A stretch of DNA of 64,000 nt from Paraphysomonas bandaiensis (GCA_965644295.1 CBFFRP010000616.1:128859-192858), one strand, 5' to 3'; counted from the stretch's first letter, positions 1 to 37,700 are shown. Program-made: numbers and translations. The notes: generated by a model not told the origin, from the sequence alone.

Positions 1-1788
1 TGTATCTGCAGGATCCAGTTCTTTATATAGTGGTGCCGCTGTGAGTGTATCATCTGGTTCTACAACTGCTGCTAATGAAGCGGGGGGGGGGCTGACTCTA
101 AGTAGTGGTGATGGCAGTATTGGGGGAAATATTGCTATTTCAAGTGGTTTGGGATTAGATGGGCGTGGTGGGGATATCTCGATGGGAGGAGGAGAATCTG
201 GAAGTGTTGGGGGTTCTGTTAATGTCAGGGGTGGTTTCTCCAATGTAGGAATTGGCGGTGATACCACTTTACAAGGCGGTGATTCAGAGTTGTTTGCTGG
301 AGCCGGTCTTGCATTAGCTGGAGGTTCTCAACTCAAAGGTGGTGATGCAGTCTTGTCAAGTGGAGCTGGTGGCGACGTTTCTATCACCACTTCTCTGTCA
401 CTCAGCAGCAGTGGTTCTGTTGCCATTGGTTCAGGGGTTGCATCGAGCGCATCTGGTGGATTAAAATTGGTGACCGGTCAGTCTGAACTGGGGCATTCTG
501 GTGACATTTTATTATCTGTTGGTGGCGGGAACGATGCCGGTGGCATATCACTAGCATCTGGTTCAGGTGTCATTAGCGGAGGAGAAGTCGCCATTGATGG
601 TGGTTCATCAATATCAGGAACTGGTGGCCGAGTGTCTTTGACAAGTGGTATATCCACATCTAGTAGTGGTTCTGGCAGTGTTTCACTGGTGTCATCTGCG
701 TCAACTGGACAATCGGGTTCTGTTACACTTTTATCTGGAACTGCCACTATGTCATCATCTGGTTCAGTATTGATATCATCTGGTGATGGTGCTTCAGCTG
801 GTAGTGTAGCTGTATCTGCAGGATCCAGTTCTTTATATAGTGGTGCCGCTGTGAGTGTATCATCTGGTTCTACAACTGCTGCTAATGAAGCGGGGGGGGG
901 GCTGACTCTAAGTAGTGGTGATGGCAGTATTGGGGGAAATATTGCTATTTCAAGTGGTTTGGGATTAGATGGGCGTGGTGGGGATATCTCGATGGGAGGA
1001 GGAGAATCTGGAAGTGTTGGGGGTTCTGTTAATGTCAGGGGTGGTTTCTCCAATGTAGGAATTGGCGGTGATACCACTTTACAAGGCGGTGATTCAGAGT
1101 TGTTTGCTGGAGCCGGTCTTGCATTAGCTGGAGGTTCTCAACTCAAAGGTGGTGATGCAGTCTTGTCAAGTGGAGCTGGTGGCGACGTTTCTATCACCAC
1201 TTCTCTGTCACTCAGCAGCAGTGGTTCTGTTGCCATTGGTTCAGGGGTTGCATCGAGCGCATCTGGTGGATTAAAATTGGTGACCGGTCAGTCTGAACTG
1301 GGGCATTCTGGTGACATTTTATTATCTGTTGGTGGCGGGAACGATGCCGGTGGCATATCACTAGCATCTGGTTCAGGTGTCATTAGCGGAGGAGAAGTCG
1401 CCATTGATGGTGGTTCATCAATATCAGGAACTGGTGGCCGAGTGTCTTTGACAAGTGGTATATCCACATCTAGTAGTGGTTCTGGCAGTGTTTCACTGGT
1501 GTCATCTGCGTCAACTGGACAATCGGGTTCTGTTACACTTTTATCTGGAACTGCCACTATGTCTTCATCTGGTTCAGTATTGATATCATCTGGTGATGGT
1601 GCTTCAGCTGGTAGTGTAGCTGTATCTGCAGGATCCAGTTCTTTATATAGTGGTGCCGCTGTGAGTGTATCATCTGGTTCTACAACTGCTGCTAATGAAG
1701 CGGGGGGGGGGCTGACTCTAAGTAGTGGTGATGGCAGTATTGGGGGAAATATTGCTATTTCAAGTGGTTTGGGATTAGATGGGCGTGG
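1..1788 (+). repeat. Tandem coding repeat A, 810-nt (270-aa) unit, about 2.2 copies visible, may continue left of the window
   Basis: tgtatctgcaggatccagtt occurs at 1, 811 and 1621, and identity ends at 1788. I noticed one synonymous difference (754 A vs 1564 T). Confidence 0.97.
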
Positions 1789-4700: not shown

Positions 4701-7700
4701 CTGACAGTGTCGGTGCATCTGGAATCATGCAAATATACACTGGGACGTCATCTGGTGAGACCGGGTCGATTAATATTGCTAGTGGGAGTTCTTCTGATGC
4801 CCCAGCTGGTGGTATTTTCATCAAAGGTGGTAGTGGTGCACAATCGGGATCAGATGTAGTTCTTCATGCAGGCAGTGCATCGTCGGATGAAAGCAAAGGT
4901 GGTGGAGTGGATATAACCGCTGGTGATGGCTCGTTCGGCGGTGATGTGGTCATTGGTTCTGGTAATGGTTTCACCAGTAAATCCGGTGGTGCAATAGACA
5001 TCAGATCTGGTGGTGGAGGAGTGGTAGTGAGTAGCGGAGACGCGAGCGTGGATGGTTTGACTGGCGATATTGTGGTCAGCACGGGTTCTGGTACTGCCAC
5101 TGGATCTCTATCTTTGTCAACTGGGCATGGGTTTGGGACCGTTGCTGGTGGCATTGAACTAAGTGTTGGGTCCTCTGCAAGCGGTTCTGGATCGGATATA
5201 TTGTTATCTGCTGGAGATTCTGAGTCAAGTGGTGGCTCTGTATCAGTAGTTGGTGGAAGTAGTGCCACTGCGTCTGGTGGTGATGTTTTGGTGACTGCCG
5301 GTTCAGGTTCAGAATCTGGTCGGGCCGTGCTTCAGACTGCAACGGGTAGTGATAAGGTAACCTTGTCTGATGGTAGGGTGGATGTGCATTCTTCCGGTGG
5401 AATATCATTAAAAGTTCCGGTTTCATCTGATGCTACTTCCACGATGATTGCTTTTGGTTACGAAGACCCATCAACAGGGAATTCCAAGTATGATCTACGA
5501 TTACAGCAGTCGTCTGATTCAACTCGGTCAATCGTTGCTAGTGCTCCTCTCCAAGTGTCCAAGGTTGACTATCCGGCCGATAGTCGCATCAAACGTGATA
5601 TTGACACCGTGGATACAGATTCTCTTTTGCACCGTTTGAATCAGGTCAAGATTCAGAGCTACCGCTACACCAAGGACTGGTTAGAAGCCCGTGATGACAT
5701 AGAGGATATTCGTGTTCGTGGAGTCATTGCTGAGGATTTAGCGCAGGTGTTCCCTGAGCATGTTTCAGTCATCCCGGAATATAAGCTTGAGGATAGAGGT
5801 GTGAGTTTCAAGAATTTTCATCAAGTGGATAAAACATCGTTAATGATGGATATGATTGCTGCTATGCAATCTCAGTCCCGGCGATTTTCCACGACGCCAA
5901 ATTCGGATTCAGAGACTGGAGAGGTCAGAATGAGCTCCAGTTCCTGGTCGGAAGTACATGGTGGCACGGAGGATATGTCTTCTGGAAGTGTTTTGATGAC
6001 TTCTGGCGAGGCTTCTCTGGGCAAGTCTGGCAGTGTGTCGATAAACAGTGGACCTAGTGGTACTCAGGCGGGCAGTGTTCTATTAGCCCCTGGTACTAGT
6101 GGAAATGATGCAGGTGCGGATGTTTCTATTCGCGGTGGTGATTCATTGTCAAGGGTGTCTGTTGGCGGTGATGTGACGCTACGCAGTGGTGGTGGTGGGG
6201 CTGGGAGTGGAGATGTTTATATCTCAACTGACGAAAGCGATCAGGGCACAGGGTCAATAGCACTGATTACTGGTGATAGCGGTGCAGATGCGGCTGGTTC
6301 AGTTTCTCTTTCTGCCGGTTCTGGTGCGTCCGAAATCGGAGCAGGAGTGTCTGTTCACGGTGGTGACTCATTATTGTCTACTGGTACAGGTGGGTTGTTA
6401 TCACTTTCAGCTGGCAATGGTGCCTTGGGTGGGGATATAACAATGGTAAGTGGTGATGGACATACCAGTGGAGGGGGATCTGTATCTATTAGAGGTGGCA
6501 GTAGCCTTTTGTCGTCATTTGGCGGGTCCGTGAATATCGATGGTGGATCGTCTGTTGGGGGTTCTGGAGGGGACATCATTTTACGAAGTGGACGTAATAG
6601 TGGTGATGTAGCGGTTGCTTCGTTATCGATGTCAGGAAGTTCTTCTGGATTGGAGGGGGGAGCTGTACATTTGATGAGTGGTGTAAATTCCGATTTCACA
6701 AGTGGCAAATCCAGTTTTGGGACGTTGTCAACTTTTAGTGACAGTGGGTCTATTGAATTCGCTACTGGTACTTCTCTTTCTGGACTTTCTGGATCTATTC
6801 TGTTAGCTACTGGGGCTTCTGATTCTGGTACAAGTGGTGACGTTCGCATCAATTCTGGTTCTGGTGAGTCAAGTCGCCCGGGCAGTATTACAGTGACTTC
6901 AGGTTCTGGTCAATTAGGTGGTAATGTAGCCGTTTCTGCTGGTGCCGGCTATAGTGGACCTGGGGGATCTGTATCAGCTTTGAGTGGAGGTTCTGATAGT
7001 AGTTCGTATGGTGGCGTCGCAACCTACGGTTCTGGTGAATCGATGGGATCTAGTGGATCTGTGAGTCTTGGAAGTGGCGCTTCTGGTTCTGGTAGCTCTG
7101 GAGGGCTCATTCTATCAACTGGAGATGCGGTTTCTAGAGCTGGTGATATCACAGTGTCTGCGGGCTCTAGCACTTCATCAGAAACTGGCGCTCATGTTGT
7201 TATTCGTGGTGGTGATGTGTCTGGTCCTGGTTCTGTTGGTGGAGATGTGTCTGTATCCAGTGGGGTTGGTTCAACTGGTGGTAGTGTGGATATTCGCAGT
7301 GCTACTGGTATTGAAGGTCTGGGTGGTAGCATCAGGATCGAAGCTCAAGCAAGTGAATTACGCGCAGGATCTTTATCTCTTACAGCAGGGCATTCGAGTA
7401 ATAATGTTGGAGGCGATGTGGATGTCAGCGGGGGTTCAAGTGCATCAGGAGTAGGGGGCACTGTGGTTATTGCAGGTGGTTTGTCAGAAGATAGTTCTGG
7501 CGGTTCGGTGACATTACAGTCCGGTTCTGGATTGCTCGGGAATAGCGGTTCAGTACGTCTCCACTCCGTAGAGTCTTCCTCTGGTAGTTCTGGTAGCATT
7601 GTTTTATCTACTGGTGATGCCGCGGAAGGAATCTCGGGCGACATATCTTTGTCTGTTGGTGATTCGTTATCCCCAGGTCATGTGGACTTACGAGGTGGCT

Positions 7701-10700
7701 CCGGTACTTTGTCTGGTGGAGCTGTTGTTATGCACTCTGGCCAAAGTGTTTCGTCAGACGGGGTTGGTGGCTCTGCTTTAATTGGCTCTGATGTGTCCTC
7801 CGGGCGTAGTGGTGCAGTGTTCTTATCAAGTGGTTCTAGCAGCGCTGATTCGTCTGGGACAATTCGTGTAACGACTGGTGATAGTGCCATGGGCGCAGGT
7901 GATGTTTTGGTATCAGCTGGCCGTAGTGTGTCCGATCATGGGGCGACTGTATCTGTTGTTGGTGGTGACAGCGAGGGTGTTGCTGGTGCAGCCACTGTTG
8001 TTGGTGGCTCTGGTGCTACTGGTGGCGCGTTGAATCTTCATGGCGGCGTTGGAGTTTCAGGTGCTGGTGGATCGGTTGTCGTAGGAGCTGGAGTAGGCGC
8101 TGGAAGTGCTGCAGGTGGTTCTGTCTTGATCGAGGCTGGTAGTTCCACTGGTGAGGGAGATGGTGGTAGCATGTATATGTATGGTGGTGCAGGTTCCGTA
8201 GGAAGTGCTAGTGGTGGATCTGTTACAGTCGGTGGAGGTGAATCAATTGATGGCCTTGGTGGATCTACCTCAGTGACATCTGGGGCATCAAAGACTGGTT
8301 CTTCTGGTTCTTTGTATGTTTCGTCTGCGTCCAGTCCATCATCTGGTCACTTATTTTTATCGACTGGCGCTTCTTCTTCTGGAATAAGTGGCGATATTAA
8401 AATTGCTGTGGGTGATACCATCTCGGCACATTACTCACCGGGTAACTTACATGCTATATCTGGAAGTGGGCCCTCGGGAGGGTATGTTGATATTCGTGGT
8501 GGTCAGGGAACACTACATGGTGGTGGTGGAGTGCTACTCTCTTCTGGTTCTACAACCACAGCAGATAGATATAGCGGTGAGGTTTCTGTCCTTTCTAGTG
8601 CTTCTAATGCAGGAAGTGGAATGGTGTCAGTTGAAAGCGGATCAGGATATAGATCTGGTGCAGTGTTTCTGAAGAGTGGAAATAGTTTAACAGGAACATC
8701 TGGTGATGTTTTGGTATCAGCTGGCCGTAGTGTGTCCGATCATGGGGCGACTGTATCTGTTGTTGGTGGTGACAGCGAGGGTGTTGCTGGTGCAGCCACT
8801 GTTGTTGGTGGCTCTGGTGCTACTGGTGGCGCGTTGAATCTTCATGGCGGCGTTGGAGTTTCAGGTGCTGGTGGATCGGTTGTCGTAGGAGCTGGAGTAG
8901 GCGCTGGAAGTGCTGCAGGTGGTTCTGTCTTGATCGAGGCTGGTAGTTCCACTGGTGAGGGAGATGGTGGTAGCATGTATATGTATGGTGGTGCAGGTTC
9001 CGTAGGAAGTGCTAGTGGTGGATCTGTTACAGTCGGTGGAGGTGAATCAATTGATGGCCTTGGTGGATCTACCTCAGTGACATCTGGGGCATCAAAGACT
9101 GGTTCTTCAGGTGGTATTAGTATTGCTTCCACATCAGGTCAGGTGGATACGGGAGTCGTTGTTATATCTAGTGGCTCCTCGGGTTCAGGAAATAGTGGCG
9201 AGTTGTCATTGCGAACTGGTGAATCTCCAAATGGATTTGCGGGAAATATTTTGTTGTCAGCAGGGACAAGCTCGTATGCCGCTGATCTTGGAAATGCTGG
9301 TGTAACGTTGTCTGCAGGAAGTGGGTTCACTGGTGGTGATGTGTCGGTTGAAGCTGGTGTAGGATTGGTCGGAACTGGTGGTGACTTATTGGCAACATCA
9401 GGGACGGCTGCTTCAGTAACTTCTTCGAGTGGAGCAGTTCATATCCGTTCTTCAACTTCTCCGTTTTCTACAGGCCCCATGATAATCTCTAGTGGGAATG
9501 GTGCCTCGACGGGTGCAGTAAATGTGCAGAGCGGAACTTCCTCAGATGGTTTAGCTGGTGATGTTTTGGTATCAGCTGGCCGTAGTGTGTCCGATCATGG
9601 GGCGACTGTATCTGTTGTTGGTGGTGACAGCGAGGGTGTTGCTGGTGCAGCCACTGTTGTTGGTGGCTCTGGTGCTACTGGTGGCGCGTTGAATCTTCAT
9701 GGCGGCGTTGGAGTTTCAGGTGCTGGTGGATCGGTTGTCGTAGGAGCTGGAGTAGGCGCTGGAAGTGCTGCAGGTGGTTCTGTCTTGATCGAGGCTGGTA
9801 GTTCCACTGGTGAGGGAGATGGTGGTAGCATGTATATGTATGGTGGTGCAGGTTCCGTAGGAAGTGCTAGTGGTGGATCTGTTACAGTCGGTGGAGGTGA
9901 ATCAATTGATGGCCTTGGTGGATCTACCTCAGTGACATCTGGGGCATCAAAGACTGGTTCTTCAGGTGGTATTAGTATTGCTTCCACATCAGGTCAGGTG
10001 GATACGGGAGTCGTTGTTATATCTAGTGGCTCCTCGGGTTCAGGAAATAGTGGCGAGTTGTCATTGCGAACTGGTGAATCTCCAAATGGATTTGCGGGAA
10101 ATATTTTGTTGTCAGCAGGGACAAGCTCGTATGCCGCTGATCTTGGAAATGCTGGTGTAACGTTGTCTGCAGGAAGTGGGTTCACTGGTGGTGATGTGTC
10201 GGTTGAAGCTGGTGTAGGATTGGTCGGAACTGGTGGTGACTTATTGGCAACATCAGGGACGGCTGCTTCAGTAACTTCTTCGAGTGGAGCAGTTCATATC
10301 CGTTCTTCAACTTCTCCGTTTTCTACAGGCCCCATGATAATCTCTAGTGGGAATGGTGCCTCGACGGGTGCAGTAAATGTGCAGAGCGGAACTTCCTCAG
10401 ATGGTTTAGCTGGTGATGTTTTGGTATCAGCTGGCCGTAGTGTGTCCGATCATGGGGCGACTGTATCTGTTGTTGGTGGTGACAGCGAGGGTGTTGCTGG
10501 TGCAGCCACTGTTGTTGGTGGCTCTGGTGCTACTGGTGGCGCGTTGAATCTTCATGGCGGCGTTGGAGTTTCAGGTGCTGGTGGATCGGTTGTCGTAGGA
10601 GCTGGAGTAGGCGCTGGAAGTGCTGCAGGTGGTTCTGTCTTGATCGAGGCTGGTAGTTCCACTGGTGAGGGAGATGGTGGTAGCATGTATATGTATGGTG

Positions 10701-13700
10701 GTGCAGGTTCCGTAGGAAGTGCTAGTGGTGGATCTGTTACAGTCGGTGGAGGTGAATCAATTGATGGCCTTGGTGGATCTACCTCAGTGACATCTGGGGC
10801 ATCAAAGACTGGTTCTTCAGGGAATATTCTTGTTTCTTCAGTCGATGCTATTTCGAGTAGGAGTGGAGAAATCGATATTCGTTCTGGTTCGAGTGAATTA
10901 TCGACAGCCGGCTCGTTAGTTTTTGGTGTAGGTGTTAGTGGGTCTGACGGAAATGGTACACCTGGTGGCGATATCAGAATGACAGCTGGCGATGGTTCTG
11001 AGGGCGGAGGAGCTGTTTTTGTAGCTGGTGTTGGTGTTTCAGGGAATGGTGGATCTGTTGTAGTTGATAGTGGAGATACTTTAGTTTCTTCGGCTGTTTC
11101 TGGAAGCGCCATTTTTCGAAGCTCGCGATCAATGTCGGCAACTGGTAGTGTCACTCTTGAAAGTGGGTCATCGAGCTCAGCTAGTAGCGGCTCTTTGTTT
11201 ATTCGTAGCGGTCATGGGCAGAGTTCATCGGGTGATATTTTATTGTCGTCAGGATCATCTGATAATGCCCCTGGACATGTTATCGTGAGTGGTGGCAACG
11301 CTTTCTCTGCTTCTGGATCCGGTGGTTCAATTCAATTGCTGGGTGGTCATGGGGCAACTGGGGGAAGTATTGATATCAGCAGTGGAACCGGCAGCAGTGG
11401 TCGTGGTGGTCAAATTTATATTTCTACTGGCGACAATTCACATGTTGATGGAAGTGAAATTTTCATTGGAACTGGAAAATCATTTGCTGGACGAGGTGGT
11501 GACATGTCATTGGAATCTGGTGGTGCCATTTCTTTAGAAGCTGGTCGTATCAATTCTGAACATGGTGGTAGTATAAGTCTCACAACAGGGACAGTTTCGT
11601 CTGGCCAGTCCGGACAATTAAATCTAAGAACTTCGTCAGCTTTGAATTCGGGTGATGTACAAATATCCTCTGGTGAGTCATCAGGCTCAGCGGGTAGTGT
11701 TGTGTTTATTGCCGGAAACAGCTTGAATGAAATTGGCGGGCATTTTGATGTGCGTGCTGGGAATGGTGAAGTTGGTGGCAAAATTGATCTTGTTGCTGGG
11801 TTCGGAAATAGTGTAGGTGGTGAAATTTTTGTTTCCAGCGGAGTATCTTCAGCAGCCATGAGTGGAGATATCAGTTTAGAATCAGCTGCGTCTTTGTCAT
11901 CAGGAAGTGTACATATTCGTACTGGAAGTGGAGAGGTTAGTACTGGAGGTTTGACCTTTGTATCTGGGCATGCTTTTGACTCTGCTGGTGTGGTGACGAT
12001 TGGAGCTGGAGAATCAAGTCGGGCTGGAGCTGATGTTTCTGTGTTAGCAGGCGCTTCTCGCAACGACGTTGGCGGGAAATTATCGATGGCGGGCGGATCT
12101 GGAAGTCGTGGTGGTGATATTGTAATGCGTAGTGGTGATGGTCATTTTGGTCGGAGCGGCGATGCAGTTGTCATGTCTGGCGATGGCGAGAAGACGGGCG
12201 GTTCTGTTTCGTTGATGGCTGGCTCTACTCATGGCATAGGGGAGGGGGGGTCTGTAGTGCTAGCCGCTGGTACTGCTTCCGATGTCGATGGTGGAGTAGT
12301 AAGTATAACGGGTGGAATGTCCTCGTCACGTCGTGGTGGTGACATTTCTTTATTGAGTGGTGTTGGGGATCAGTCTGGTTCAGTTTCGATTGCAAGCGAT
12401 AAGTCATATACCACTTCTGGAGATGTCTTGTTCCGAACTGGAGACTCATCTTCTAAATCTGGTGAGATTAAGATGATAGTCGGGCATGCTAAGGATAGTG
12501 GTTCGGTTGGTGGCGACATATCACTCTACGCGGGTACAGGCGAATCTGCTGGAGAAGTGTCGGTTGCGGCGGGTTCTGGTGTTGTAAGCGGTGGATCTGT
12601 GCTATTATACTCAGGATCGTCACCCTATTCATCAGGTTCAGTTACCCTGTCGTCGGCATCGAGTGAAAAGGGTAACAGTGGTAGTGCTACACTACGTACT
12701 GGATCTGCGTCTACAGGTAGTTCTGGTTCGGTGTCGATATCAACTGGTGATGTTACTAATGGATCTGTGGGTGTTGTGGGTTTGCATGGTGGTTCGAGCG
12801 TATCTCACCTGGGTGGTGACGTGTCCATGCGTGGTGGTGTTTCGTCTGCTTCCGGTGGTGGGCATGTATCTATCAGTGGTGGTTCGGGTGCTGAAGGTGG
12901 TGAGGTTGTCATTTTAAGTGGAGCTGGTTCTGTCGGGAAATCTGGTGCCATAAATATTGGTGTGAGTGACAGCTCTGGGTCACATGCTGGCGGATCCGTA
13001 AATATATTTGGTGGTAAATCTCTTGCGGGAGGTTCTGGTGGGGATGTTAGAGTGGTTGCTGGAGAAGGTTCCGTATCATCTGCCTCTGGGGGGGTAGCTG
13101 AACTCCGAGGTGGCTCATCATCAGTTCATGGTGGATCGGTTGTAGTACACAGTGGCTCTGGCAGTGATATGTCCAGTGGTAGTGCGTCAGTATCCTCAGC
13201 AGCCTCTCACACAAGTGGGGCAGTTGATTTATCCTCAGGACCTAGTGTATCTGCGTCTGGAACAGTAACGGTGTCATCGGGAAATTCCATGGGAATGGCC
13301 GGTGATATTAGAGTAGCTGGCGGGCAGGGGCTTCGTAGTGGTAGTAACATTGGTATTAATGCAGGTGATGGGTCTGATGGTGGTGATGTGACTGTTAGTG
13401 GTGGGTCGGGAACCGATGGTTCTGGTGGGTCTGCCTTGATTTCTTCCGGTTTGAGCTCATCACTTTCCGGAACAAGTGGTATATCGACACTAGAAACAGC
13501 TGGGGGTGTCAGTGCAAGTGGCAATATCGCGATATCTAGTGGCTCATCAACACAGTCTTCGTCTGGATCGATATCTATCAATACCGGAGACAGCGTAACT
13601 GCAGAAGCGGGAAATATCTTTATTCGTAGCGGATCTGGTGAGTCAGTGGACGGTGCGGGTGTGATAATTTCTGGCGGAAGTACTTCATCTGCCAGTGGTA

Positions 13701-16700
13701 AAGGCGGTTCACTAAGTTTATCTGCTGGTTTCGGTGTTCATGGTGGAGATGTCACTATTGCGAGCGGTGAAGGCATGGAACGGTCGTCAGGGTCGGTTAC
13801 AATCAAGGCATCGCCAGGTAGTGGAGTGTCGGAAGGTGGATCTGTTGTTATTGAAGGCGGAAATTCTCGTGATGGAGGCAGTGGTGGTGATGTAGACATC
13901 AGTGGTGGCTCGGCACCACTCGGACAATCTGATGGTGGTGCTCTTAGTATAACTGGAGGACATTCTTACGGAAATGTTGGTGGTGGAACGTTTGTATCCA
14001 GTGGTGAAGGCGTCAATGGTCAGAGTGGTGTTTTGTCGTTAACTTCGGGTTCAGTTTCACGGCGCACTGGTGATGTTTATGTTTCTTCTGGTGATTCTAG
14101 TTTTGAGCAATCTGGTGATGTGGTTTTGACCACTGGTAGTTCTGACGTTGCAGGTGGTATTAGGTTAGTAGTTGGGGAAAGCAGTGGTTCAGATGCTGCT
14201 GGTGGTGATTTGACGATGGCATCTGGTGATGGTAGCACTGGTGGAGAAATTACTGTATCAGGTGGTGGTGCTCGTGAGGGAGCTGGTGGAATGATTTCCT
14301 TAGTTAGTGGTGGGTCGAAGGGAGTATCATCTCCCAGTGGTGATGTTGTTGTTGCGTCGTCAGATGATGCGGCGAGATCGGGATCAGTGAGAATTGGAAC
14401 GGGTAATGTGCCTTCGGCATCTGGAGATATTGCAATTACCAGTGGAAATAGCTTAAAGGAATCAGCTGGTAAAATTATGCTTGAATCTGGCAGTTCACCA
14501 GATATTGGTGGTGACGTTGCGATAGCAGGGGGTCATGCGCAGGTGGCAGGAATAGGTGGATCGCTGGCTTTATCCAGTGGCTCTGGTGGTGCTGGTGGCA
14601 GTCTCGATGTAGTTGGCGGATTGGGGCTGTCTGGTGAAGGTGGCGCTATTCGCATTCAATCTGGTGAATCCACGAAAGGACCAGGTGGAAATGTAGTAGT
14701 AGCAGGCGGAACTTCTACGTCAGGAGATGGTGGAAATACTAATGTTTATGCTGGATCTGCCTCCTCAGGTAAAGGTGGTAGTGTACGCATAATGAGTGGT
14801 AGGAGTGACACCAAGTCCAGTGGCGTTGTAGAGGTGATGTCATCTCCATCTGTAATAGATTCTGGTGATGTAGCGGTTGCAAGCGGAACATCAGTTAGTG
14901 GTACGTCTGGGTCAACCTTGATATCGTCTGGTTCGTCACAGTCTCGTGTGGGTAGTGTTGTCTTGCATGGAGGATCATCGATTGGGAACTTCGCTGGTGG
15001 CGATGTGATTACCTTGGCTGGTGATGGTTCTTCTGGTGGCAGTGTTTCTATATCGGCAGGCGCTGGCAGACAGGACGATGGCGGCTTTGTATCTATGGCT
15101 TCAGGGCCCAGTGCTTCTCTTGCTACCTCCAGTGGTGATGTGAATGTTGCGTCTTCAGCTGGTGCTGGGGAAAGTGGTAATGTGGCAATTAGAACGGGGT
15201 CGTCTTCGTCTTCTAGCAGTGGAAGCCTATCCATTAGTAGTGGTGACAGCGAGTCTTCACTTGCAGGATCTATTTCTGTGATAGCGGGAGAATCAAGTGG
15301 CTTAACTGGTGCTGATGTTGTTGTTTCAGCTGGGTCCAGCACATCGATCGACAGCACTGGTGGATCTCTGAAATTACTATCCGGCGAGGGTGCTAATGGC
15401 GGTGATATTTCCATACAAAGTGGTGTCGGGGCTTCTGGCCATTCAGGATCTGTTAATATTGCCGCCTCAGCGGGTAGTGGTTCAACCAATGGTGGAAACA
15501 TTAATGTCGGTGCGGGTAATTCTGAGTTTGGCACAAGTGGTAGATTGCAGTTATCAACTGGCTCATCAAGAGATGGAGAAGTCGGAGAATTCATGGTGAG
15601 TGCAGGTACCTCAGCGACGGGCACGGGCGGTAGTGTAAAGATTTTTACTGGAGAGAGCGTTGTAACCACAAGCGGTGCACTGGAATTATCGTCGGGTCCT
15701 GGATCCGCAGACCAGAATTCTGGTGAAGTGCAGTTGTCCACGGGCATTACATCTGCTGGACGGAGTGGACCTTTGCTGTTGCGAACTGGTTCATCAAGCA
15801 CTGGAACCTCTGGCGATGTAATGATTACTGTTGGTGATGGTATGGCTAGTGGGGGAGATGTTGCTTTGTCAGCTGGTGGAGGTAACAGTGGTGGCAATGT
15901 GTCACTTCGTGGTGGAAGGTCAAATGCTGCAAGCGGTGGTGACATGGCACTTTTTAGTGGCGATAGCATTGCTCCTGGCCAAAGTAGTGGTCAGGCTGTG
16001 TTTGGTTCTGCATCTTCGCACGTATCTAGTGGTTCGATTGTTGTCTCCTCTGGTTCATCTAGCTCCGGTTCTAGTGGTTCTGTATTCATTGGTAGTGGTG
16101 ACAGTGCGGCATCCATGGCTGGTGGCGTTACATTATCTGCGGGTGCTGGTGTATCCGATATTGGTGCCAGTGTTTCTGTTCATGCTGGTGACTCGATGGC
16201 CCAGTCTAGTGTAGGAGGCGAGTTGTCACTATTAAGTGGTTCTGGTTCTTCTGGTGGCGATGTGATGATTGAAAGTGGCAAAGGTTCACTATCTAAGGGT
16301 GGATCTATTGCTATCAATGCTGGTAAGTCTGACGATGGCACTGGAGGGTCGATTGAAGTTGGTAGTGGTAGCTCTGATGGTGGCCTCGGTGGTTTGTTGT
16401 CGTTAACTGGGGGCGACTCATTTGCATCTATTGGTGGCGATGTTTTATTATCTTCCGGAGATTCCATGAACGATGTGAGTGGATCGGTTCGTTTAGTAAG
16501 TGGCAAATCTTTGAACGGCCTTACAAGTGGTGGTGTCACCCTCGGAACCAGTGGATCCATAATGGGAGCTACAGGTGACTTGATGCTTTCCACTGGTGGA
16601 CTTAGCTCCGGAACATCTGGTAGTGTATCTGTAGAGACTGGTGGCGGTGGTGATGTTGGTGGCGACATATCTATGTCTGCAGGCGATGCCATTGAAGGTG

Positions 16701-28700: not shown

Positions 28701-31700
28701 GTGGTGAAGTGTTGATAGCAGGTGGCGGAAGTGACATGACAGTTGGTGGTACTCTCCGGCTTAGATCTGGTATTGGCTTTACTGCGTCAGGAGGCATTGA
28801 AATAGGTTCCCCGGTATCGTCCAGTGGAAGTTCCGGGTCTATGACTGTGTCGACTGGGGACTCCAGTGATGAATCTGGCAGTTTATTTTTAGCTGTAGGT
28901 TCAAGTGCGCATGGTGTTGGCGGATCTGTCGTCGTCAGTTCTGGTGAGGGGCATATAGGTGGTAATGTAGATATTGGTGGTGGTCGGGGTTTGGACAGTT
29001 CTGGTGGAGGAGTAGAAGTACGGAGTGGTGATTCTGCTGATGCCACATCGTCTTCTGGAGACATTACCTTTTATTCTGCAGATACTTCATCGTCATCTGG
29101 TAAAGTGCTAATTAGCACGGGGAAGTCGTTTAGTGCTTCGTCTGGTGCAGTGTTTGTTGGGAGTGGGGATAGTAACGATTTGACTGGAGAAGTGGCAGTC
29201 GTGGGTGGTTCTAGTAGTGGTGTTGGGCAATCGAGCTTAACTTTGTCAGGTGGTAGTTCTCTCAGTGGTAAAGGAGGTAGTGTGCGGCTCGGTAGTGGTT
29301 ATGGTACGGAAGGAGGTGATGTTTTTGTCAGAAGTTCTGGTGCATCTGCGGGCCGTTCTGGTGACGTTAGAGTTAGTGTTGGTGACAGCAGTGAGCTTTT
29401 CTCTGGCGGAGTCGTGGAGGTTCGTAGTGGACATTCTCTTGCTGGCGAAAGTGCTGGTGGGATTGATATGAAAGCTGGTTCCGGTATGTCTGCTGTGGGT
29501 GGCTCATTTGGAATTTCTGGAGGAGCATCATCGGACTCTATGGGTGGTTCTGTGATCATATCCAGTGGTAAAGGTGGTGATAAAAGTAGTGGAGAAATCT
29601 TGATGAAAACAACTGATGGAATTTCGAGTGGTGATATTGGAATTAGTAGTGGTCATTCGTCCCTTGGCAAGGCTGGGGACATTACTTTGGATGTCGGTGA
29701 TTCAAGTCACACTGTTGGAGGTGGAATAGAAATGTCCGCAGGAAATGGGTTGTCTGGCGGTCGCATTGACCTGTCGGGTGGTCATGCTGTTGAATCTAAT
29801 GGTGGTTCAATTTCCGCTCGTAGTGGAACCAGTACTACGTTTGGAACTGGGGATGTACATATCGCATCGGCAGATGGAAAGTTGTCAACTGGTGATGTAG
29901 TTATGTCCAGCGGAATATCATCGCATGGAACTTCTGGAATGGTGACTTTGAGAAGTGGATCGAGCGATTCGTCCTCTGCAGGCGCTGTCAATATTTTTGC
30001 AGGGTCTAGTGAAGCGACATACGGGGCGTATGTCTCCATTGCTGCTGGCGATGCACTCATGGACAGTGGAATTGGAGGCACCCTTTCAATTATGGGGGGC
30101 TCTGGTGGTAGTGGTGGTGATGTTAGTATATCTGGTTCTGCAGGGAGTGATGTGGATGGTGGAAATGTCCGACTAAGAGGAGGATCTGGTGTGAAAAATG
30201 GAGGAGTTTTGGAAATGACATCAGGGGATTCCACCGCTAGTGGTCGAGGTGGTGAAGCTTCGGTGAATGCTGGTGCTGGATTCAGCGGTGGATCAGTGCA
30301 GTTACGTGCCGGGGATATATTAGGGACTGGTGGTGGCACGGTCTCCTTGTCTAGTGGCTCGTCCAGTGTTGAAAGTGGTGGCATTTTGCTCTCTACTTCA
30401 AGTTCTGAGATTTCCAGTGGTACAATTGCTATTCAGTCTGGTGATGGTCTAAGTGGCAGTTCGGGTGATGTTGTAGTAACAACCGGGACTTCAGATCATG
30501 GAGGTGGCGATATAATGTTGTCTGTTGGGTCCAGTGGTGATGGCAGTTATCGAGGTGCATCAATTTCTATGGCTTCTACAAGGAATTCTTTAAGTGATGG
30601 TGGTTTTGTAAGTATTACTGGTGGGACTGGAAATTCTGTGGCAGTTATCAGTGGTGATGGTTCCACAACTGCAGCTGAAAGAAGTGGAGTACTTCTCTTG
30701 GCATCGGCCTCGAGTGCGTCATCTGGATCTGTATCTTTAGGAAGCGGTTTCGCTTCAAGTGGGTTGTCTGGTGAAGTCAAAATTGGATCTGGTGACAGTA
30801 CTGATGGGAAAGCAGGAGATGTTGCTGTCATCTCAGGGGATAGTATGACGAGTGGTGGAGATGTATATCTTAATGCTGGCGGTTCAAGAGGTGAGAGTGG
30901 GGGCAACACATACATCAGTGCTGGAAAAGGTAGTTCTGGTGGCAGTGTTAGTATTTATAGTGGTGCTGGTGAAGCTGGAACTAGTGGTGATATAGCTGTT
31001 GCTGTTGGCAGCAGTACTGGATCTTTTCAATCTGGAGATATTTCTCTAGCTGGTGGTCAATCTGAAACGTCTTCTGGTGGCTTTATTTTGATTCAGGGGT
31101 CTGCTAGCGGCAGCGTTGACGTTAGTGGTGGGGTGTCATCAGAAGATAGTACTGGTGGTGCGGTCCTTATTAGTAGCGGCTTAAGCCACGGCGGTCCAAG
31201 CGGAACTGTATTGCTTTCTTCTTCGTCTGGACAGTTTAGTAGTGGCGATGTGATTGTTGCTACTGGATCTTCTGAAGTTGGATCCGCGGGCTCTATTGCT
31301 CTTTCTGCTGGTAATAGCGATGGCATAGACAGCAGCGGTTCCGCCGTATCTGTCACTGCAGGATCTGGTGCTCAAGGAGGGGATATAAATATTTCTGGCG
31401 GATCAGGGTATCACGATCGGGGAGGAACTGCTCTTATTTTAGGAGGAAGCAGTAGTTCGTCTAATTCTGCTGGCGGAGATGCTGTATTGCGTTCGGGATT
31501 TTCGTCTTTCTCTAGCGGTGAAGTTATTGTGGAAAGTGGCAATTCGGATGGAACTACGGGAGCCGTACGAATATCATCGGGTGCTTCCCTATCTCGTGCC
31601 GGAAAGATTGAAATACAATCTGGAGAAAGTGTGCATCAAGAAGGTGCGGATGCAACCCTGTCGGCTGGAAGTGATAGTTCAGTGTCAGAACGGGGCGGTA

Positions 31701-34700
31701 CGGCTCGTGTGTTTGGTGGTAGTGGTTCTAGTGGAGGAGGTGTAATCTTGGAGAGTGGTAGAGGTGTTGACAAAGCCTCCGGATCTATTGTTATTGCGGT
31801 TTCTGAGTCGTTGGGCGCTTTTGGAAGCGGTGATGTCTTGATGCAAGGCGGTCAAGTGCGAGAAGGAAATGGTGGGGCTGTCAGGATTGCAGGCGGTTAT
31901 TCATCTTCCAGTGGGCCTGGTGGTGATGTTTCAATTTCCAGTGGGTCGTCTTTCGATGGCGAGAGTGGGGCTATTCGCGTCCAGTCATCTTCTGCTTTCA
32001 ACTCTGGAGATGTTTCTGTTGGGACTGGTGATAGTTTGGCACCGTCTGGATCAATTCTGTTGTCTACTGGGCAGTCAGAGGATGGTACGTCAGGTGGCAT
32101 CGACATTAGCATAGGTGACAGTGATAAAAATGGTGGTGGTATATCCCTTAGCGGTGGGCTTGGTACTGGTAAAGGTGGGGATGTTACCTTAAATGCTGGG
32201 AGGAGCGCTAACGGTGTTGGTGGCTCTCTCATATTTTCAAGCGGTGGGACTGATACAACTAATACGAGTGGCTCTGTTTATATTCATACTGAGTCTTCTA
32301 GCTCCTCCGGTGGAGTGTATATTTCCAGTGGAGCGTCAACGACCTTTGAATCTGGCTCGGTTGTCATAAATAGTGGTGATATGGTGCAAGCGGAAGCTTT
32401 GTCTACGGGTGCCTCACTCATATCAGGAAGTTCACTTCATAGCAGTGGCGTCAGCACATTAGTTGGTGGAGGTAGATCTGAATTTTCTGACGGTGTGGGT
32501 GGAAGTGTCTTGATTACAAGTGGTAGCGGAAGTACAGGTGGTGATATTGCTGTGTATAGCGGTGATGGGAAGAACGGTGGGTCAATTTTGTTGTCTTCCA
32601 GTGGAGGAAATATTGATATAGACTCGGGGGTGTCTGCAACAACTGGCGGGACTGTGTCACTTCGTGGTGGCGAAAGCATTCGTAAAGGGGGTGATGCTAC
32701 TGTGTCGGCTGGATGGTCTCATGAAGATTCTGGTGGCTCCACTGTAATATCTAGTGGCTCGAGTGTTTCGTCGTCGAGTGGACTCATATCAATTTACTCA
32801 GAGGCCGCTCCGCTTTACAGTGGGGATATTGTTTTGTCTAGTGGTTCTGCTGTATTTGGTGATTCTGGATCGGTGTATATATCCTCAGGTTCTTCTGCGA
32901 AATCTTCTACTGGTGTCGTTGCCATTAGTTCTGGTTATAGTGTCAGCGAGCGCGGTGGTGATATGGTTTTGTCCGCTGGCTCAGGTGGTTTGGGAGGCAA
33001 TGTGGTATTGTCTTCTGGCGAGGCAACAGATTCTGTGGAAAGTGGATCGATGTCAGTACGGAGTTCATCTCGTGGTAAAGCTGTATTTGGTTCTAGCATT
33101 GCAACGTCTGGATTTAGCGGTGATGTCTCAGTCGATAGTGGAGATGCTAAGCTGGAATCGGGCGATGTTAGGTTAAGATCCGGTGATAGTGTGGATTCAT
33201 CTGCAGGATTTGTGTCTGTGGTAGCCGGTACTAGCTCATCAAGTGGTGGTGCAAGTGTGAGACTCATTGGAGGAAAAAGCAGCGGCAATGTAGGGGGCAA
33301 CGTATTCGTTGCTGGTGGTGATGGTGTGCGTGGTGGTGATATGGAGCTTTCTAGCGGTGATGGTTTTGGAGATTCCAGTGGAAATTTGTCGCTACTCGTA
33401 CCCGGTGGAACGGATTCCATTGAAACGGGTTCTATACTTTTGAGTGTTGGTCCCGCCGAAAAAGCACCCGGTTCTATTTTCTTGTCTTCAGGTTCATCAT
33501 TGGGTGGCGGGTCTGTGACTGGGAATATTGATGTCGCCAGTGGGGACTCAGTTGATGGAATTGGCGGGAGTGTGTCGATGTTCAGTGGATCAAGTAGAAT
33601 AGGGAATAGCGGTAAAATGCGCTTGGCAACATCATCTGGTGATAGTTCAGGCGATTTACTTATTAATTCTGGTGATGCCATTTCTGGCCAAGTTGGTGCT
33701 ATTCTTCTTTCTGGTGGTCAAAGTAAATCTGAAACTGGCGATGGTGGTGTAGTATCTCTTCACGGTGGTCATGGATATCGAGGCGGATCGACTACTATTG
33801 ATGGGGGCGAGGGTGATTTCGGCGGTGAACTTAATCTTTCCGGAGGAACAGGTGTTTTCGAAGGAGGTAGTGTATCAATTGCCTCTGCTACTGGTTTATC
33901 GAGTGGGTCAGTATCTATTAGATCTGGTTCTTCTGGAGGTATTTCAGGTGATGTGGTTTTGGAGAGTGGTGACTCATCTGACGCGACATCGGGTGCTATT
34001 CGACTGAAAGTTGGTAGTAGTCTGAGTTCCGGCTCCGATGTTCATGTTGCAGCAGGTGTTTCGACTCAGTCGACAGGTGGTAGCGCAATAATAGCTGCTG
34101 GTGATGGTGTTAACGGGGGGGATGTTGTGATAAAAAGTGGTCGTGGAAGTAGTGGACACTCAGGCGGTGTGGATGTTAGTGTTCCAAGTACTGGGGCTAG
34201 TTCTGGCGGTGGGATTACCTTTCGGTCTGGAAATTCTGAAATTGGTGGTGGTGGAAGTATTGCTCTTACAGGCGGTGCGAATGCCGAAACCTCTGATACA
34301 GTTGGCGGTGCTGTGAGTGTTCATGGTGGTTTCAATTCTGGCCGAGTTTCTATTATGTCAGGGTCTTCGTTGTCTGGAGGTGGAGGAGCAGTTGTATTGG
34401 AAACCCCAGAGTCTGCTCAAAGCGGGGATATATCCCTAGTGACCGGGAAGGCGTCGCAGAAATCTGGTTCTGTACGTGTATTATCTGGGCCATCAGGATA
34501 TACTGATGGCGGTAGTGTAAGCATTGGTGGTGGCGGAAGCGATGGACATGATTCGTCAGGGGGGGGTATATCCCTGATTGCTGGATATGGAAGTACAGGT
34601 GGAGCTGTTGTCGTTAACGGAGGTCTTGGTACTTCTAGTATTGGAGGTAGCGTTTACCTTAGTGGTGGTAGTGGAATGAGCGCTGATATTGCGAGTGGTA

Positions 34701-37700
34701 GTGTTGATATTCTTACCTCGCAGTCATCATCTGGAACAGGAGCTATTTCATTGCTTAGTGGTGACAGTAGATTTTCGTCTTCTGGATCAATTGCAATTCG
34801 ATCTGGAAGCAGCCATGAAGCATCGTCTGGTGATATAGCGATTGTTGGTGGCACGAGTGGAGGTGTAGCAGTGGGATCATCAGTTACAGTGTCTGCAGGT
34901 GATAGCAGTATCACCAGTGGTGGAAAAGCTCTTATTTCAGGCGGAAATGGTGCTGTTGGAGGTGAGGTTGCTGTTGGAGGTGGCTTGGGTCATGATAGCA
35001 CAAGTGGTTCTATAAGCCTGTCATCTGTTGAGTCAAGTAGTGGTAGTTCTGTATCAATCAAATCTGGTATGTCGTTTATCGGGGATAGTGGAAGGGTGTC
35101 TATTAGCGCCGGAGAGTCATTAAGTGGTGCCGGTGGCATCATTGATTTGGTAGGCTATTCGAGTGCTCATGGCTCGGGGGCTGTCAACGTTGTTGGTGGC
35201 TCGGTATCAATTTCTTCCGACTCAAGCAGTTCTTTGAGTACTGTAGATATTAGCTCTGGCTCGTCAACCGGAAACACTGGTGATGTTAGAGTTGCCACTG
35301 GGTCGAGTATGATTGGCAATTCGGGTACCATCATACTATCAGTCGGTTCAACGTCAGTTTCGTCGGGACCAGCGTTATCGCTAGGTGACGATTCTAATGA
35401 TGCTAAAGGCATAATTATGTCTGCAGCAGTTTCGAGTAGTGAAAATGGTGGTTCTGTTACAGTGAGTAGTGGTGGTAGTGCATCATCTGCTGATACCGGG
35501 GGGGGTATATATCTCCGTACAGGTATGTCTACATCTGTTAGTGGACCCGTAAAATTGTTCAGTGGTACTGCTTCATTTTCTTCTGGAGTTGTGTCTGTTG
35601 CAAGTGGACAATCAAATGAGAATAGTGGAAATGTTGTTGTATCCAGTGGTGCTGCTGATCGTAATGGTGGTGAGTTGCTTTTATCTACAAGTGATTCTGG
35701 CTCTGCTGGTGATATTAGGATAAGCGGAGGTGTCTCAACAAGTAATCGTGGATCTTCTGTCGTAGTTAATGCCGGCAGCGCTCTGGGTGCGAGTGCTATG
35801 GATGAAGGGGGTAGTATTACACTCTCTGCTGGAAGTAGTCTGGGGTCTGCTGGTGGTGACGTTATTGTGTCCTCTGGAGATGGTACTGTTTCTAGCGGTG
35901 TGACTATATTGCGGTCTGGTGATAGTAGCCTTGAGCTATCCAAGGATCACGTTGACATAAGTTCTGGTGGATCGGCTTCTTTTCGCATACCCATGCCCAC
36001 TGGGGATGGAGACAGTGGTACAATTGGCCTTGGAGTTTTGGACCCATCTTCTGATAGGGCTGTCTATGATTTCCGCCTCCGAGCGTTTAATGACAGCTCG
36101 CGTATGTTGATTGCTAGTTCGCCAATGCAGGTCACTAAGGTTCAATACTCCTCTGATGAGAGAATAAAGCGTGATATTCAGCCAGTTGATGAAAATTCTA
36201 TACTTCATCGACTCAAACAAGTTCAGCTTCAGAGTTATCGGTACACTGAGGAGTGGCTTGGAGTGCGTGACGATGTTCAGGACGTGAGAGTAAGAGGTGT
36301 TATTGCCCAGGAATTGGCTAAAGTGTTTCCTGAACATGTTAAAGTCATACCTGAATACACTTTAGAAGACAAAAATATTACATTTAAAAATTTCCACCAA
36401 GTTGACAAGACATCCCTAATGATGGATTTAATTGCTGCTATTCAAGAACAGGCCAAGCGATTTTCCTCAGAAGAGAACACTGCAAGTAAGGGTGGGGATG
36501 TACGTATCAGTTCCGCTACGTGGGATGAAATCATGGACTCGTCTCCAGATACTGCAACCGGAGATGTGTATATTACGTCTGGTGAATCAAGATTTGCGCA
36601 ATCTGGTAATGTTCGAATTGGGAGTGGAAGTAGTGGTGCGACTTCTGGCGATGTGAAGATTGAAGCTGGTTTGAGTGGATCTGGTAATGGATCTCCTGTT
36701 CTGATACATGGTGGATCTGCTTCACAGTCTCACGAAAATAGTGGTGGGTCTGTTGAGCTGTCTGGTGGTGGTGGATATTCATCTGGGGATGTCGTGGTGT
36801 CCACGCTCTCAGCGACTGGTAGTTCTGGAAGTATTGTCCTTTCTGTTGGCAGCTCAAAGTCTGGATCGGGTGATCTTCGCTTCACTGCTGGTTCTGGTTC
36901 CCGTGGTGGCAACTCGGTTATTGTTTCAGGCTCGGCAACTTCTGGTGCTGGTGGTGCTATGTTTATTTCTAGTGGCGCGTCTGCAGTGGGGACTGGTGTC
37001 AGTGGAGAATCATTCTTTGGGTCTGCATCATCTCCTAGTGGCAGCGGGAGTGTTCGTATCGCCTCCGGTTTATCAAGTGCGAATAGCGGCTCTCTTACTA
37101 TTGCGAGTGGAGACAGTGATGACGGGCGTGTCTCTCCTTTGTCATTATTTGGAGGCAGTAGTAAGTATCATTCTGGTGGTGATGTTTTAGTGCATGCGGG
37201 CTCTTCTGAGTCTTCCTTAAGTGTTGGTGGTAGTCTGCATTTGTCTGCTGGTTCCGGACCCACTGGCGGAAATACAAAAGTATCTGGTGGAGATGGTATT
37301 TCTGAAAGTGGAGGGGGTTTAATTTTGAGCGGTGGTGATGGATCTGGTTCGGCGGCAGCAGGAAATGTAGATATTCAGGGAGGTCAGTCTTCTCTATATT
37401 CCGGAAGTGTCCGGTTAGGTGCTGGTTTTAGCGAAAATTCTCCTGGTCGGGTTAGTATATATTCTGGCAATTCTGTAGCTCGTAGTGGTGGCGACGTGAC
37501 TTTGTCGTCTGGCTCGAGTGTGACCGGTAGTAGTGGTTCTCTTTTAATAGAGACGTCTGATAGTACATATGGTAAATCGGGAGATATAACGCTAATGACT
37601 GGGTTATCAAAAACTGGATCAGCTGGTGGTATTCTAGTCATGGTTGGTGATTCTCAATCTGCAGCGGAAGGGTCTGAAATTGTATTTTCATCCGGTAGTG

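Follow-up and report, generated by a model that had tools for sequence, protein, structure and literature searches.

In phages, the ICA (intramolecular chaperone auto-processing) domain trimerises, helps the triple beta-helix or stalk upstream of it to fold, and cleaves itself off at a conserved Ser. The locus analysed here raises the question of what such domains could do inside a giant repetitive chain, where one of two copies has lost the nucleophile and repeats extend for thousands of residues on both sides. The whole stretch of DNA that we analysed, 64,000 nt in length, is called the window below.

An open frame filled with 15-residue repeats

A six-frame stop count over the 64,000-nt window showed that frame +2 is free of stops from nt 2 to nt 64000 (21,333 codons) and open at both ends, while each of the other five frames contains 281-1,652 stops. 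The window covers only the inner part of a single giant gene (>64 kb, >21,333 aa) whose two ends lie beyond it, and holds repeat protein throughout, without flanking genes. The features are as follows.

2..64000, + strand: single stop-free frame (+2), internal part of a giant gene (codon count, composition, codon-position divergence)
2..5359 (aa 1-1786), + strand: repeat segment A, ~15-residue units, with an 810-nt (270-aa) super-repeat of 99.8% identity near the 5' end
5360..5575 (aa 1787-1858), + strand: neck before ICA copy 1, conserved and beta-rich (alignments A1 and A2; strands predicted in the copy 2 equivalent)
5576..5896 (aa 1859-1965), + strand: ICA copy 1, predicted non-cleaving (PF13884, 40.8 bits; motif A-D-S-R-I-K)
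5897..35932 (aa 1966-11977), + strand: repeat segment B, ~15-residue units and 285-aa super-repeats
12677..25686 (12677-19140 and 19223-25686), + strand: tandem 6,546-nt (2,182-aa) block in two copies, 99.83% identity
26502-28285, + strand: third, partial copy of the 6,546-nt block
35933..36151 (aa 11978-12050), + strand: neck before ICA copy 2, conserved (alignments; predicted strands)
36152..36472 (aa 12051-12157), + strand: ICA copy 2, predicted cleavage-competent (PF13884, 53.9 bits; AF2; Foldseek)
36473..49822 (aa 12158-16607), + strand: repeat segment C, a conserved restart after the ICA and then 15-residue units
41499-46533, + strand: 810-nt super-repeats in segment C
49823..64000, + strand: 273-nt array (91 aa, or 6 x ~15 aa), ~52 copies of ~90% nt identity, leaving the window at its 3' end

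The polypeptide encoded in the window alone amounts to about 1.96 MDa and is composed of 25% Ser and 24% Gly, with a single Cys and 10 Trp; counted from composition only, it contains 6,537 Ser and Thr residues and 20 N-x-S/T sequons. The only stretches of the whole frame with less than 25% Gly plus Ser are the two ICA blocks. A Ser/Gly-rich repeat of 15 residues, in about 1,400 units, makes up the rest; Gly occupies its position 6 (96%) and position 14 (94%), giving two Gly "corners" 7-8 residues apart. Anchors are spaced by exactly 15 residues in 632 of 1,409 cases and by 13-17 residues in 1,169 of them. The dodecapeptide repeat GSxxSx7 is not the unit of the window, where just one run of three GS spaced by 12 was found. 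There is no convincing hydrophobic (transmembrane) segment in the 21,333 aa, the top 19-aa window being a Gly/Ala/Val repeat, and no Pfam match to an Ndt80-like DNA-binding domain in the frame pieces spanning nt 2-63999; upstream of the ICAs there are repeats only.

Within the 273-nt array, divergence at the first, second and third codon positions is 0.079, 0.048 and 0.172, respectively. Because the third position diverges 2-3.5 times as much as the first and second, the array is under coding constraint. Every repeat period is divisible by three. There are many near-identical internal duplications (99.4-99.9%), and exact copy numbers of the repeats could be wrong.

Two ICA domains and their catalytic residues

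Exactly two matches to Pfam PF13884 (Peptidase_S74) exceed its gathering score of 22 bits in the whole of frame +2. Copy 1 is matched at aa 1860-1921 (nt 5579-5764) with 35.4 bits in a 5,000-aa piece, and as an isolated block it reaches 40.8 bits (E 2.7e-10; the match begins at profile position 2). Copy 2 is matched at aa 12051-12114 (nt 36152-36343) with 48.4 bits in a 5,000-aa piece and 53.9 bits as an isolated block (E 2.3e-14; profile 1-58). The codons at the nucleophile position (nt 5576 and nt 36152) lie 30,576 nt or 10,192 aa apart, exactly the distance at which the original prediction had placed two S74-like domains. The repeats that it described on both sides, with thousands of residues downstream, are equally real: 1,786 aa precede copy 1, 10,012 aa lie between the copies and 9,176 aa follow copy 2, while 19,368 aa follow copy 1 within the window. 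Its assignment of the domains to the tailspike/MYRF type agrees with the PF13884 profile and the predicted fold, whereas PF13887, the other profile it had proposed, found no match in frame +2 or in the isolated blocks. It had also proposed to count further copies in the flanking sequence; within the window, an HMM made from both ~180-aa blocks turned up no third ICA.

The best PDB match by sequence is the MyRF ICA 7dc3 (E 5.9e-9). For the neck and ICA of copy 2, the AF2 model has a pLDDT of 85-96 over the ICA, and Foldseek ranked 7dc3 first again (TM 0.62-0.66, normalised to the target; rmsd 2.8 A), followed by 3gw6, 4uw8 and 3gud, which like 7dc3 are intramolecular chaperones of trimeric fibres. 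Judged by the profile for both and by the predicted fold of the copy 2 model, both domains are true ICA/Peptidase_S74 domains.

The two copies are 58% identical over 180 aa and differ at the catalytic centre. In copy 2, Ser12051 (nt 36152-36154), Arg12054, Lys12056, Tyr12079/Tyr12081 and Gln12103 are present, so that the MyRF cleavage-centre positions read S, R, K, YxY, I and Q, and the Ser-Lys dyad (S-D-x-R-x-K; S12051, K12056) is complete. In copy 1 the dyad is broken: Ala1859 stands at the nucleophile position (nt 5576-5578) with Lys1864 kept, and Glu1911 (nt 5732-5734) replaces the cleavage-site Gln, while R, K, YxY and the hydrophobic core are retained. The Ala of copy 1 is the same change as in the MyRF mutant S587A. 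Both S587A and K592A were uncleaved, and S587A still crystallised as a trimer (PMC8326128). From these residues, copy 2 is predicted to be active, with the scissile bond just before Ser12051, and copy 1 inactive, which fits the earlier expectation that some copies would be active. S1861, two residues past the nucleophile position in copy 1, might act as a substitute.

Relatives, genomic context and known systems

Three algal assemblies (GCA_024449685.1, GCA_024449875.1 and GCA_024449835.1) contain uncharacterised orthologues, which share with the window the same neck and ICA block (47% identity) and the same 15-residue and 91-aa modules (37-49% identity). These genes are about 12 kb in length against more than 64 kb here, and as assembled, their frames contain stops and frameshifts. 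Relatives carry 2-3 ICAs per gene, of which the first has Ser and later ones Ala or Asp, so homologues with a multi-ICA layout, for which a search had been proposed, do exist. Their spacing is not periodic as supposed, with 10,192 aa in the window, 330-410 aa in the algal orthologues, where the ICAs cluster mid-gene, and >3,150 aa in the relative L005, a variation of about 30-fold. After its final ICA, the complete algal gene continues with ~1,600 aa of repeat and terminates in a non-ICA domain; segments therefore do not each require an ICA at their C-terminus. The N-terminus of the relatives is Cys-rich, with weak PSI matches below the gathering score.

In a tree of the ICA copies, the Ala+Glu state arose at least four times, as forced by the starred branches. 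The two copies of the window are sisters, which could reflect gene conversion, and their terminal branches measure 0.26 (copy 1) and 0.16 (copy 2). The Ala/Asp+Glu state is also retained in orthologous copies of the three algal assemblies. Since copy 1 is conserved relative to copy 2, the relatives carry Ser first and then Ala or Asp, and Ala+Glu arose repeatedly, the non-cleaving state seems to have been selected and not to have decayed.

Four loci with relatives (L001-L004) adjoin genes for TTL, Zip, PUB and an HSP70, the last being nearest to the HSP70 of xanthophytes and brown algae, with 83% identity to Tribonema and 77-80% to brown algae; another relative (P0008) is from EukProt. Judging from these sequences, the gene most likely belongs to a eukaryotic microbe, an alga or protist. 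A phage or bacterial tail-fibre setting does not hold, because the relatives sit on eukaryotic, ochrophyte-like contigs.

The window protein can be likened, by description, to the TLP-12 glycofibril, both being giant (~20,000 aa) protist proteins that consist almost wholly of short Gly/Ser-rich tandem repeats and have an ICA. In TLP-12, cryo-EM revealed a triangular triple beta-helix built from three chains, in which each repeat (a dodecapeptide GSxxSx7) spans two sides and the Ser residues bear large O-glycans; the candidate proteins of Amoebophrya are ~20,000 aa, Gly/Ser-rich and carry one C-terminal ICA, e.g. UniProt A0A8J1ZHD7 with 19,853 aa (2025 preprint, bioRxiv 10.1101/2025.09.30.679562). 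The two Gly corners of the 15-mer parallel this two-sides-per-repeat geometry, and Ser is likewise abundant in the window (25%). TLP-12 differs in its 12-residue unit and single C-terminal ICA, against a 15-residue unit and two internal ICAs, one without the nucleophile; its proteins come from alveolates, while the relatives of the window point to stramenopile-like algae.

MyRF (7dc3) is the closest solved relative by sequence and fold, with the Ser-Lys dyad, Arg and Tyr-x-Tyr at the same positions. Its ICA is also internal to the polypeptide, and cleavage frees an N-terminal trimer (PMC8326128, PMC3742443). The alignment ends ~30 residues short of the MyRF chain end, the C-terminal helix being shorter in the window ICA. 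MYRF has an Ndt80-type DNA-binding domain and a transmembrane segment, neither of which is in the window, which in turn has more than one ICA per chain and thousands of repeat residues on both sides of each. The phage ICAs of endoNF/K1F (3gw6), T5 pb1 (4uw8) and GA-1 gp12 (3gud) belong to the same family and fold; they are single C-terminal domains that are discarded, whereas the window has more than one, placed inside the chain and in one case lacking the nucleophile, and the genomic context is eukaryotic. The kind is thus already known, namely giant trimeric Gly/Ser protist fibrils with an ICA, and the window is an unusual variant of it. The earlier remark that a characterised protein of this architecture is not known needs restricting in view of the single ICA of the giant TLP-12 proteins and the internal one of MYRF. 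What is new is the several internal ICAs, the recurrent nucleophile-dead copies and the 15-mer unit.

A proposed trimeric fibre and its alternatives

The explanation that we favour, giving it slightly better than even chances, is that the window encodes the protein core of a giant trimeric extracellular fibre with live and dead ICAs inside the chain. The product would be the core of a micrometre-scale fibre outside the cell, in which the ~1,400 units of 15 residues would build a parallel three-chain triple beta-helix, with the repeat Ser probably O-glycosylated by analogy with the TLP-12 glycofibril. Each ICA would trimerise and lock the three chains in register, so that the adjoining helix may begin to fold well ahead of completion of the chain. 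With its Ser12051 and Lys12056 intact, copy 2 would cut the chain just before Ser12051 and separate an upstream fibre from a downstream fibre that starts with an ICA trimer, while copy 1 (Ala1859, Glu1911) would trimerise without cutting and remain as a knot that keeps the chains permanently in register. Several observations speak against this reading: the unit of 15 residues in place of the TLP-12 12-mer, the repeat that follows the last ICA of the algal gene, the ~30-fold range of ICA spacing, and the monomer AF2 model of the repeats, which varies greatly between the five models (pLDDT 77 to 37) and has neither DSSP strands nor a structural match in PDB.

A beta-solenoid formed by one chain, in which every unit makes a 15-residue coil, is unlikely but deserves the most attention among the alternatives. 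It would give a monomeric surface or matrix fibre, ~0.7 um long for the window, in which the ICAs are only local ties or processing sites and not folding nucleators. The spruce budworm antifreeze protein is an example of a single-chain beta-helix with coils of 15 residues, and the ICA-free end of the last ~1,600-aa repeat segment in the algal orthologue would suit such a fold. For three 91-aa repeats, the best monomer AF2 model reaches a pLDDT of 77 and a pTM of 0.66 without partner chains; the five models, however, disagree strongly, and this model contains no DSSP strands within the chain. Besides, the structurally characterised ICAs all sit on trimeric beta-helical stalks (3gw6, 4uw8, 3gud, 7dc3; PMC8326128), and the presence of two Gly corners in each unit recalls the TLP-12 geometry.

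We consider it improbable that the gene encodes a plain polyprotein, in which only the Ser-bearing ICAs matter and cut themselves to release fibre products, copy 1 being a decaying, functionless relic of duplication. The missing nucleophile, the Glu in place of the cleavage-site Gln and the longer terminal branch of copy 1 would agree with decay, but this copy still scores 40.8 bits against PF13884 with its R, K, YxY and hydrophobic core, remains 58% identical to copy 2 within a 64-kb stop-free frame, and has a catalytic state that arose repeatedly and was kept in three algal assemblies.

An oversized tail or capsid fibre of phage, bacterial or giant-virus origin is very doubtful. PF13884 is mainly a phage tail-fibre domain, tblastn gave weak matches to tail-fibre genes from phages of Klebsiella and Escherichia (26-36% identity, E 4e-4 to 5e-5), and one relative is titled 'tail fiber domain-containing protein [archaeon]'. 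Against this, single-protein and alignment queries found no relative in 185,579 prokaryotic species genomes (GTDB) or IMG/VR, every context-bearing relative lies among eukaryotic cellular genes, and the closest solved ICA is that of MyRF, not of a phage. The least probable explanation is an artefact, either a satellite repeat left open by chance or a far shorter gene that misassembly has expanded. The near-identical duplications, including the 6.5-kb tandem pair, are hard to assemble and orthologues elsewhere are just ~12 kb, but the frame has zero stops in 64 kb, third-position-biased divergence and periods in multiples of three, along with two globular domains that are well conserved and a 91-aa module kept across species.

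Returning to the trimeric fibre, we tentatively suggest, as a possibility that is rather less probable than the fibre itself, that megadalton fibres carry an assembly programme of their own, made up of live and dead ICAs together. Dead copies would be permanent knots holding three chains in register, allowing a triple beta-helix longer than 10,000 residues to fold section by section, live copies would cut the precursor into segments of defined length, and the protease-dead state (Ser to Ala/Asp and Gln to Glu) may have been selected repeatedly in different protist lineages.

Coding status and repeats of the giant frame

Frame +2 contains no stop in its 21,333 codons and is open past both window ends; each of the other five frames contains 281 to 1,652 stops in the six-frame translation of the whole window. 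Because the frame is open beyond both ends, this gene is absent from the ORF listing. Ser makes up 25% and Gly 24% of the translation, which has 1 Cys and 10 Trp, and the polypeptide encoded within the window amounts to about 1.96 MDa. Frame +2 is a genuine coding sequence and not an accidentally open satellite, since every repeat period is a multiple of three, the divergence in a 52-copy array of 273-nt repeats is concentrated at third codon positions (17.2%, vs 7.9% at first and 4.8% at second positions), and the 91-aa module of this array is conserved in other species at 37-49% identity. Long ORFs also occur on the minus strand (up to 437 aa listed and 493 aa open; e.g. 37654-38967, 14746-15969 and 21292-22515), where they recur with the repeat periods of the + strand, and frame -2 has 281 stops in 64 kb. 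As genes they were rejected, since they seem to mirror the GGT/AGT/TCT-rich codon bias of the coding strand.

The spacing of hydrophobic-x-hydrophobic anchors shows a sharp peak at 15 residues, corresponding to about 1,400 units. In the consensus of this unit, Gly is nearly invariant at position 6 (96%) and position 14 (94%), indicating two corners per unit, 8 and 7 residues apart, while the outward positions are mostly Ser. The longer repeats are as follows.

Higher-order repeats: blocks of 270/285 aa
12677-19140 and 19223-25686, + strand: tandem pair of a 6,546-nt block, 99.83% identity
26502-28285, + strand: third, partial copy of the 6,546-nt block, 99.8-99.9% identity
273-nt period, + strand: array of about 52 copies of the 91-aa (6-unit) module, continuing past the 3' end of the window

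The 6,546-nt tandem duplication is possibly a very recent duplication, a product of gene conversion or an assembly problem. The repeats match neither a Pfam family nor any sequence in the PDB, and AF2 monomer modelling of three 91-aa modules gave inconsistent models with 0 DSSP strands and 0 Foldseek matches.

Two internal ICA domains and their catalytic residues

We searched frame +2 over the whole window for the domain of intramolecular chaperone auto-processing (ICA), and it turned out that Peptidase_S74 (PF13884) has exactly 2 matches, at aa 1860-1921 (copy 1) and aa 12051-12114 (copy 2). Both exceed the gathering score when the translation is searched in 5,000-aa pieces (35.4 and 48.4 bits), and the scores on the isolated blocks are 40.8 and 53.9 bits. 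The codons of the two nucleophile positions lie 30,576 nt apart, confirming the pair of S74-like domains reported at this distance in the original prediction; PF13887 ("MYRF_ICA"), which had been suggested as a second profile, gave no match on the isolated blocks at E up to 1. Each PF13884 match falls inside a conserved neck-plus-ICA block, about 180 aa long, whose neck is beta-rich. The blocks share 58% identity with each other and are the sole stretches of the whole frame that are not Gly/Ser-rich; an HMM built from them found no third or degenerate copy in the window.

Among solved structures, the MyRF ICA is nearest in sequence (7dc3, E 5.9e-9), and phage fibres rank behind it. For copy 2, an AF2 model of neck and ICA was built from a 27-sequence family alignment, in which the ICA has a pLDDT of 85-96. 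The top structural match is again 7dc3 (target-normalised TM 0.62-0.66, rmsd 2.8 A), and the other best matches are the endosialidase chaperone 3gw6, T5 pb1 (4uw8) and GA-1 gp12 (3gud).

Copy 2 carries the motif S-D-E-R-I-K and retains the equivalents of MyRF S587, R590, K592, Y615, Y617, I637 and Q639. In copy 1 the motif is A-D-S-R-I-K: Ala1859 stands where the nucleophile would be, and Glu1911 occupies the Q639 position. In MyRF, S587A and K592A abolish cleavage, and S587A is the form crystallised as a trimer (PMC8326128). As this mutant is uncleaved yet trimeric in the crystal, copy 1 would be, by analogy, a natural equivalent of a non-cleaving, folding-competent MyRF. The sequence also raises the possibility that S1861 (nt 5582-5584), two residues after the nucleophile position of copy 1, may act as a substitute nucleophile. 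The same arrangement, A-D-S-R-I-K/A with Ser two residues past the lost nucleophile, is found at the equivalent sites of three related proteins (P0002, P0017 and P0018).

Relatives and their ICA layouts

A profile search without length limit retrieved 848 proteins at E <=1e-3 and 39 at <=1e-30, mainly short metagenome fragments, and a metagenome scan with an 8-sequence alignment found only 6 loci. None of the gene models of 5,500-17,500 aa shares the ICA block; A0A8J1ZHD7 from Amoebophrya and others of about 20,000 aa lie beyond this size range. The ICA blocks of the window are most similar (60-64% identity) to P0008, a eukaryotic relative from EukProt, and to a JGI metagenome protein. With a single ICA block and the 8-sequence alignment as queries, no relatives were found in the prokaryotes of GTDB (185,579 species genomes), nor in IMG/VR by protein-pattern scans. 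These empty scans speak against a phage or bacterial origin, and the phage database gave two weak tail-fibre matches only.

Where a relative has genomic context, that context is eukaryotic. The contigs with three algal orthologues (P0001, P0002 and P0017) are 43-61 kb long, belong to three NCBI assemblies that are highly fragmented (GCA_024449685, GCA_024449835 and GCA_024449875), and have TTL, Zip, PUB and HSP70 genes beside the orthologues. The neighbouring HSP70 shares 83% identity with Tribonema minus, 77-80% with brown algae and 68-74% with named diatoms, values that place these contigs among ochrophyte stramenopiles. Besides, RYG63291.1 (P0005), a member of this eukaryote-linked family on a 3-kb MAG contig, bears the database name "tail fiber domain-containing protein [archaeon]"; its contig is probably mis-binned.

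The gene of the algal orthologues is about 12 kb in size. Its N-terminal region is Cys-rich, with CxxC...CGYC motifs (5076-5573 in locus L004 and 9743-10100 in locus L003), and has weak PSI (plexin repeat) matches, scoring 15.8 and 17.8 bits against a gathering score of 23.1. These features hint that the protein is extracellular, either secreted or at the cell surface. At the 3' end, a pre-neck-like motif is followed by a non-repeat domain of about 100 aa (L004, about 17100-17449), for which we found no Pfam or PDB relative. A cryptic ICA at this C terminus was rejected, as only the pre-neck repeat motif aligns, and the domain may serve as a different kind of terminal cap or as an anchor. Unlike the clean frame of the window, the orthologue frames are interrupted by frameshifts and single TAG/TGA stops (L001 9884-15301; L002 9809, 12458 and 14009; L004 9998-10056 and 12761). 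The mixture of TAG and TGA, together with the frameshifts, led us to reject an alternative genetic code, and the interruptions could reflect noisy assemblies or decaying copies.

The algal orthologues contain three, three and two ICA blocks, spaced by 330-410 aa. Ser occupies the nucleophile position of the first block, and the blocks after it carry Ala or Asp there, combined with Glu. More than 3,150 aa of repeat precede the sole visible ICA of a metagenome relative. Family-wide, Ser and Lys are both present in 110 blocks, and one or both are missing in about 24. None of 95 Ser blocks has Glu at the Q639 position, vs 7 of 24 non-Ser blocks, rows that are not independent of each other. In the maximum-likelihood tree, copies 1 and 2 of the window are sisters (98/91). 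Given the starred branches, the Ala+Glu state must have arisen at least 4 times, and the Ser/Gln (SQ) label must have changed at least 6 times, which favours repeated selection of the non-cleaving state, with the caveat of gene conversion between the two copies of the window. Multiple ICAs are rare, but they occur outside this family too: P0105, an unrelated protein with BNR-like repeats on a 28.9-kb ENA metagenome contig, has two tandem ICAs at its end, both with the Ser-Lys dyad. It represents a second, different multi-ICA architecture.

Proposed register and segmentation of a giant fibre

A giant protist Gly/Ser fibre with an ICA is, as a general kind, already described. TLP-12, a glycofibril from pond water, has been solved as a triangular triple beta-helix of three Gly/Ser dodecapeptide-repeat chains, with two sides per repeat, a rise of 9.6 A and large O-glycans on Ser2 and Ser5; its candidate proteins, of about 20,000 aa with one C-terminal ICA, come from Amoebophrya and other alveolates (bioRxiv 10.1101/2025.09.30.679562). 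The window differs from TLP-12 in three respects: its unit has 15 residues instead of 12, two or more ICAs lie far within its chain, one of them without the nucleophile, and its relatives are found in stramenopile-like algae instead of alveolates. With TLP-12 geometry, the part of the chain encoded in the window would form a putatively glycosylated triple beta-helix about 1.35 um long; a single-chain solenoid would measure about 0.68 um. MYRF offers a precedent for an internal ICA.

The original prediction had proposed that repeated internal ICAs could act as periodic trimerisation and folding nucleators, and that the active ones could cut the precursor into defined segments. The underlying observation holds, and this interpretation is partly supported. 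A simple model of one periodically spaced ICA per upstream segment is disfavoured by the sequence comparisons, because ICA spacing varies about 30-fold between relatives, the ICAs of the algal orthologues are clustered, and the last segment of the algal gene has no ICA. In the reading with the best support, the ICAs would trimerise and bring three chains into register at points within the chain; copy 2 would next cut before Ser12051, while copy 1 would stay as an uncut knot.

This reading addresses the puzzle of how three chains of 10,000-20,000 residues find and hold their register in a triple beta-helix. To our knowledge, all studied cases have a single C-terminal ICA, thought to nucleate folding, which emerges only once the whole chain is made. 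Several in-chain ICAs, some of them naturally non-cutting, suggest sectional folding and controlled segmentation, and these natural counterparts of the S587A laboratory mutant suggest that the chaperone function is separable from the protease function. With this family, the newly recognised class of giant fibril proteins in protists reaches past alveolates, into stramenopile-like algae and to a different repeat length; the family also offers sequence candidates for unidentified environmental cryo-EM fibrils. The window offers a natural pair of predicted cleaving and non-cleaving ICAs in one megadalton chain, together with a testable model of how very long triple beta-helices might fold section by section.
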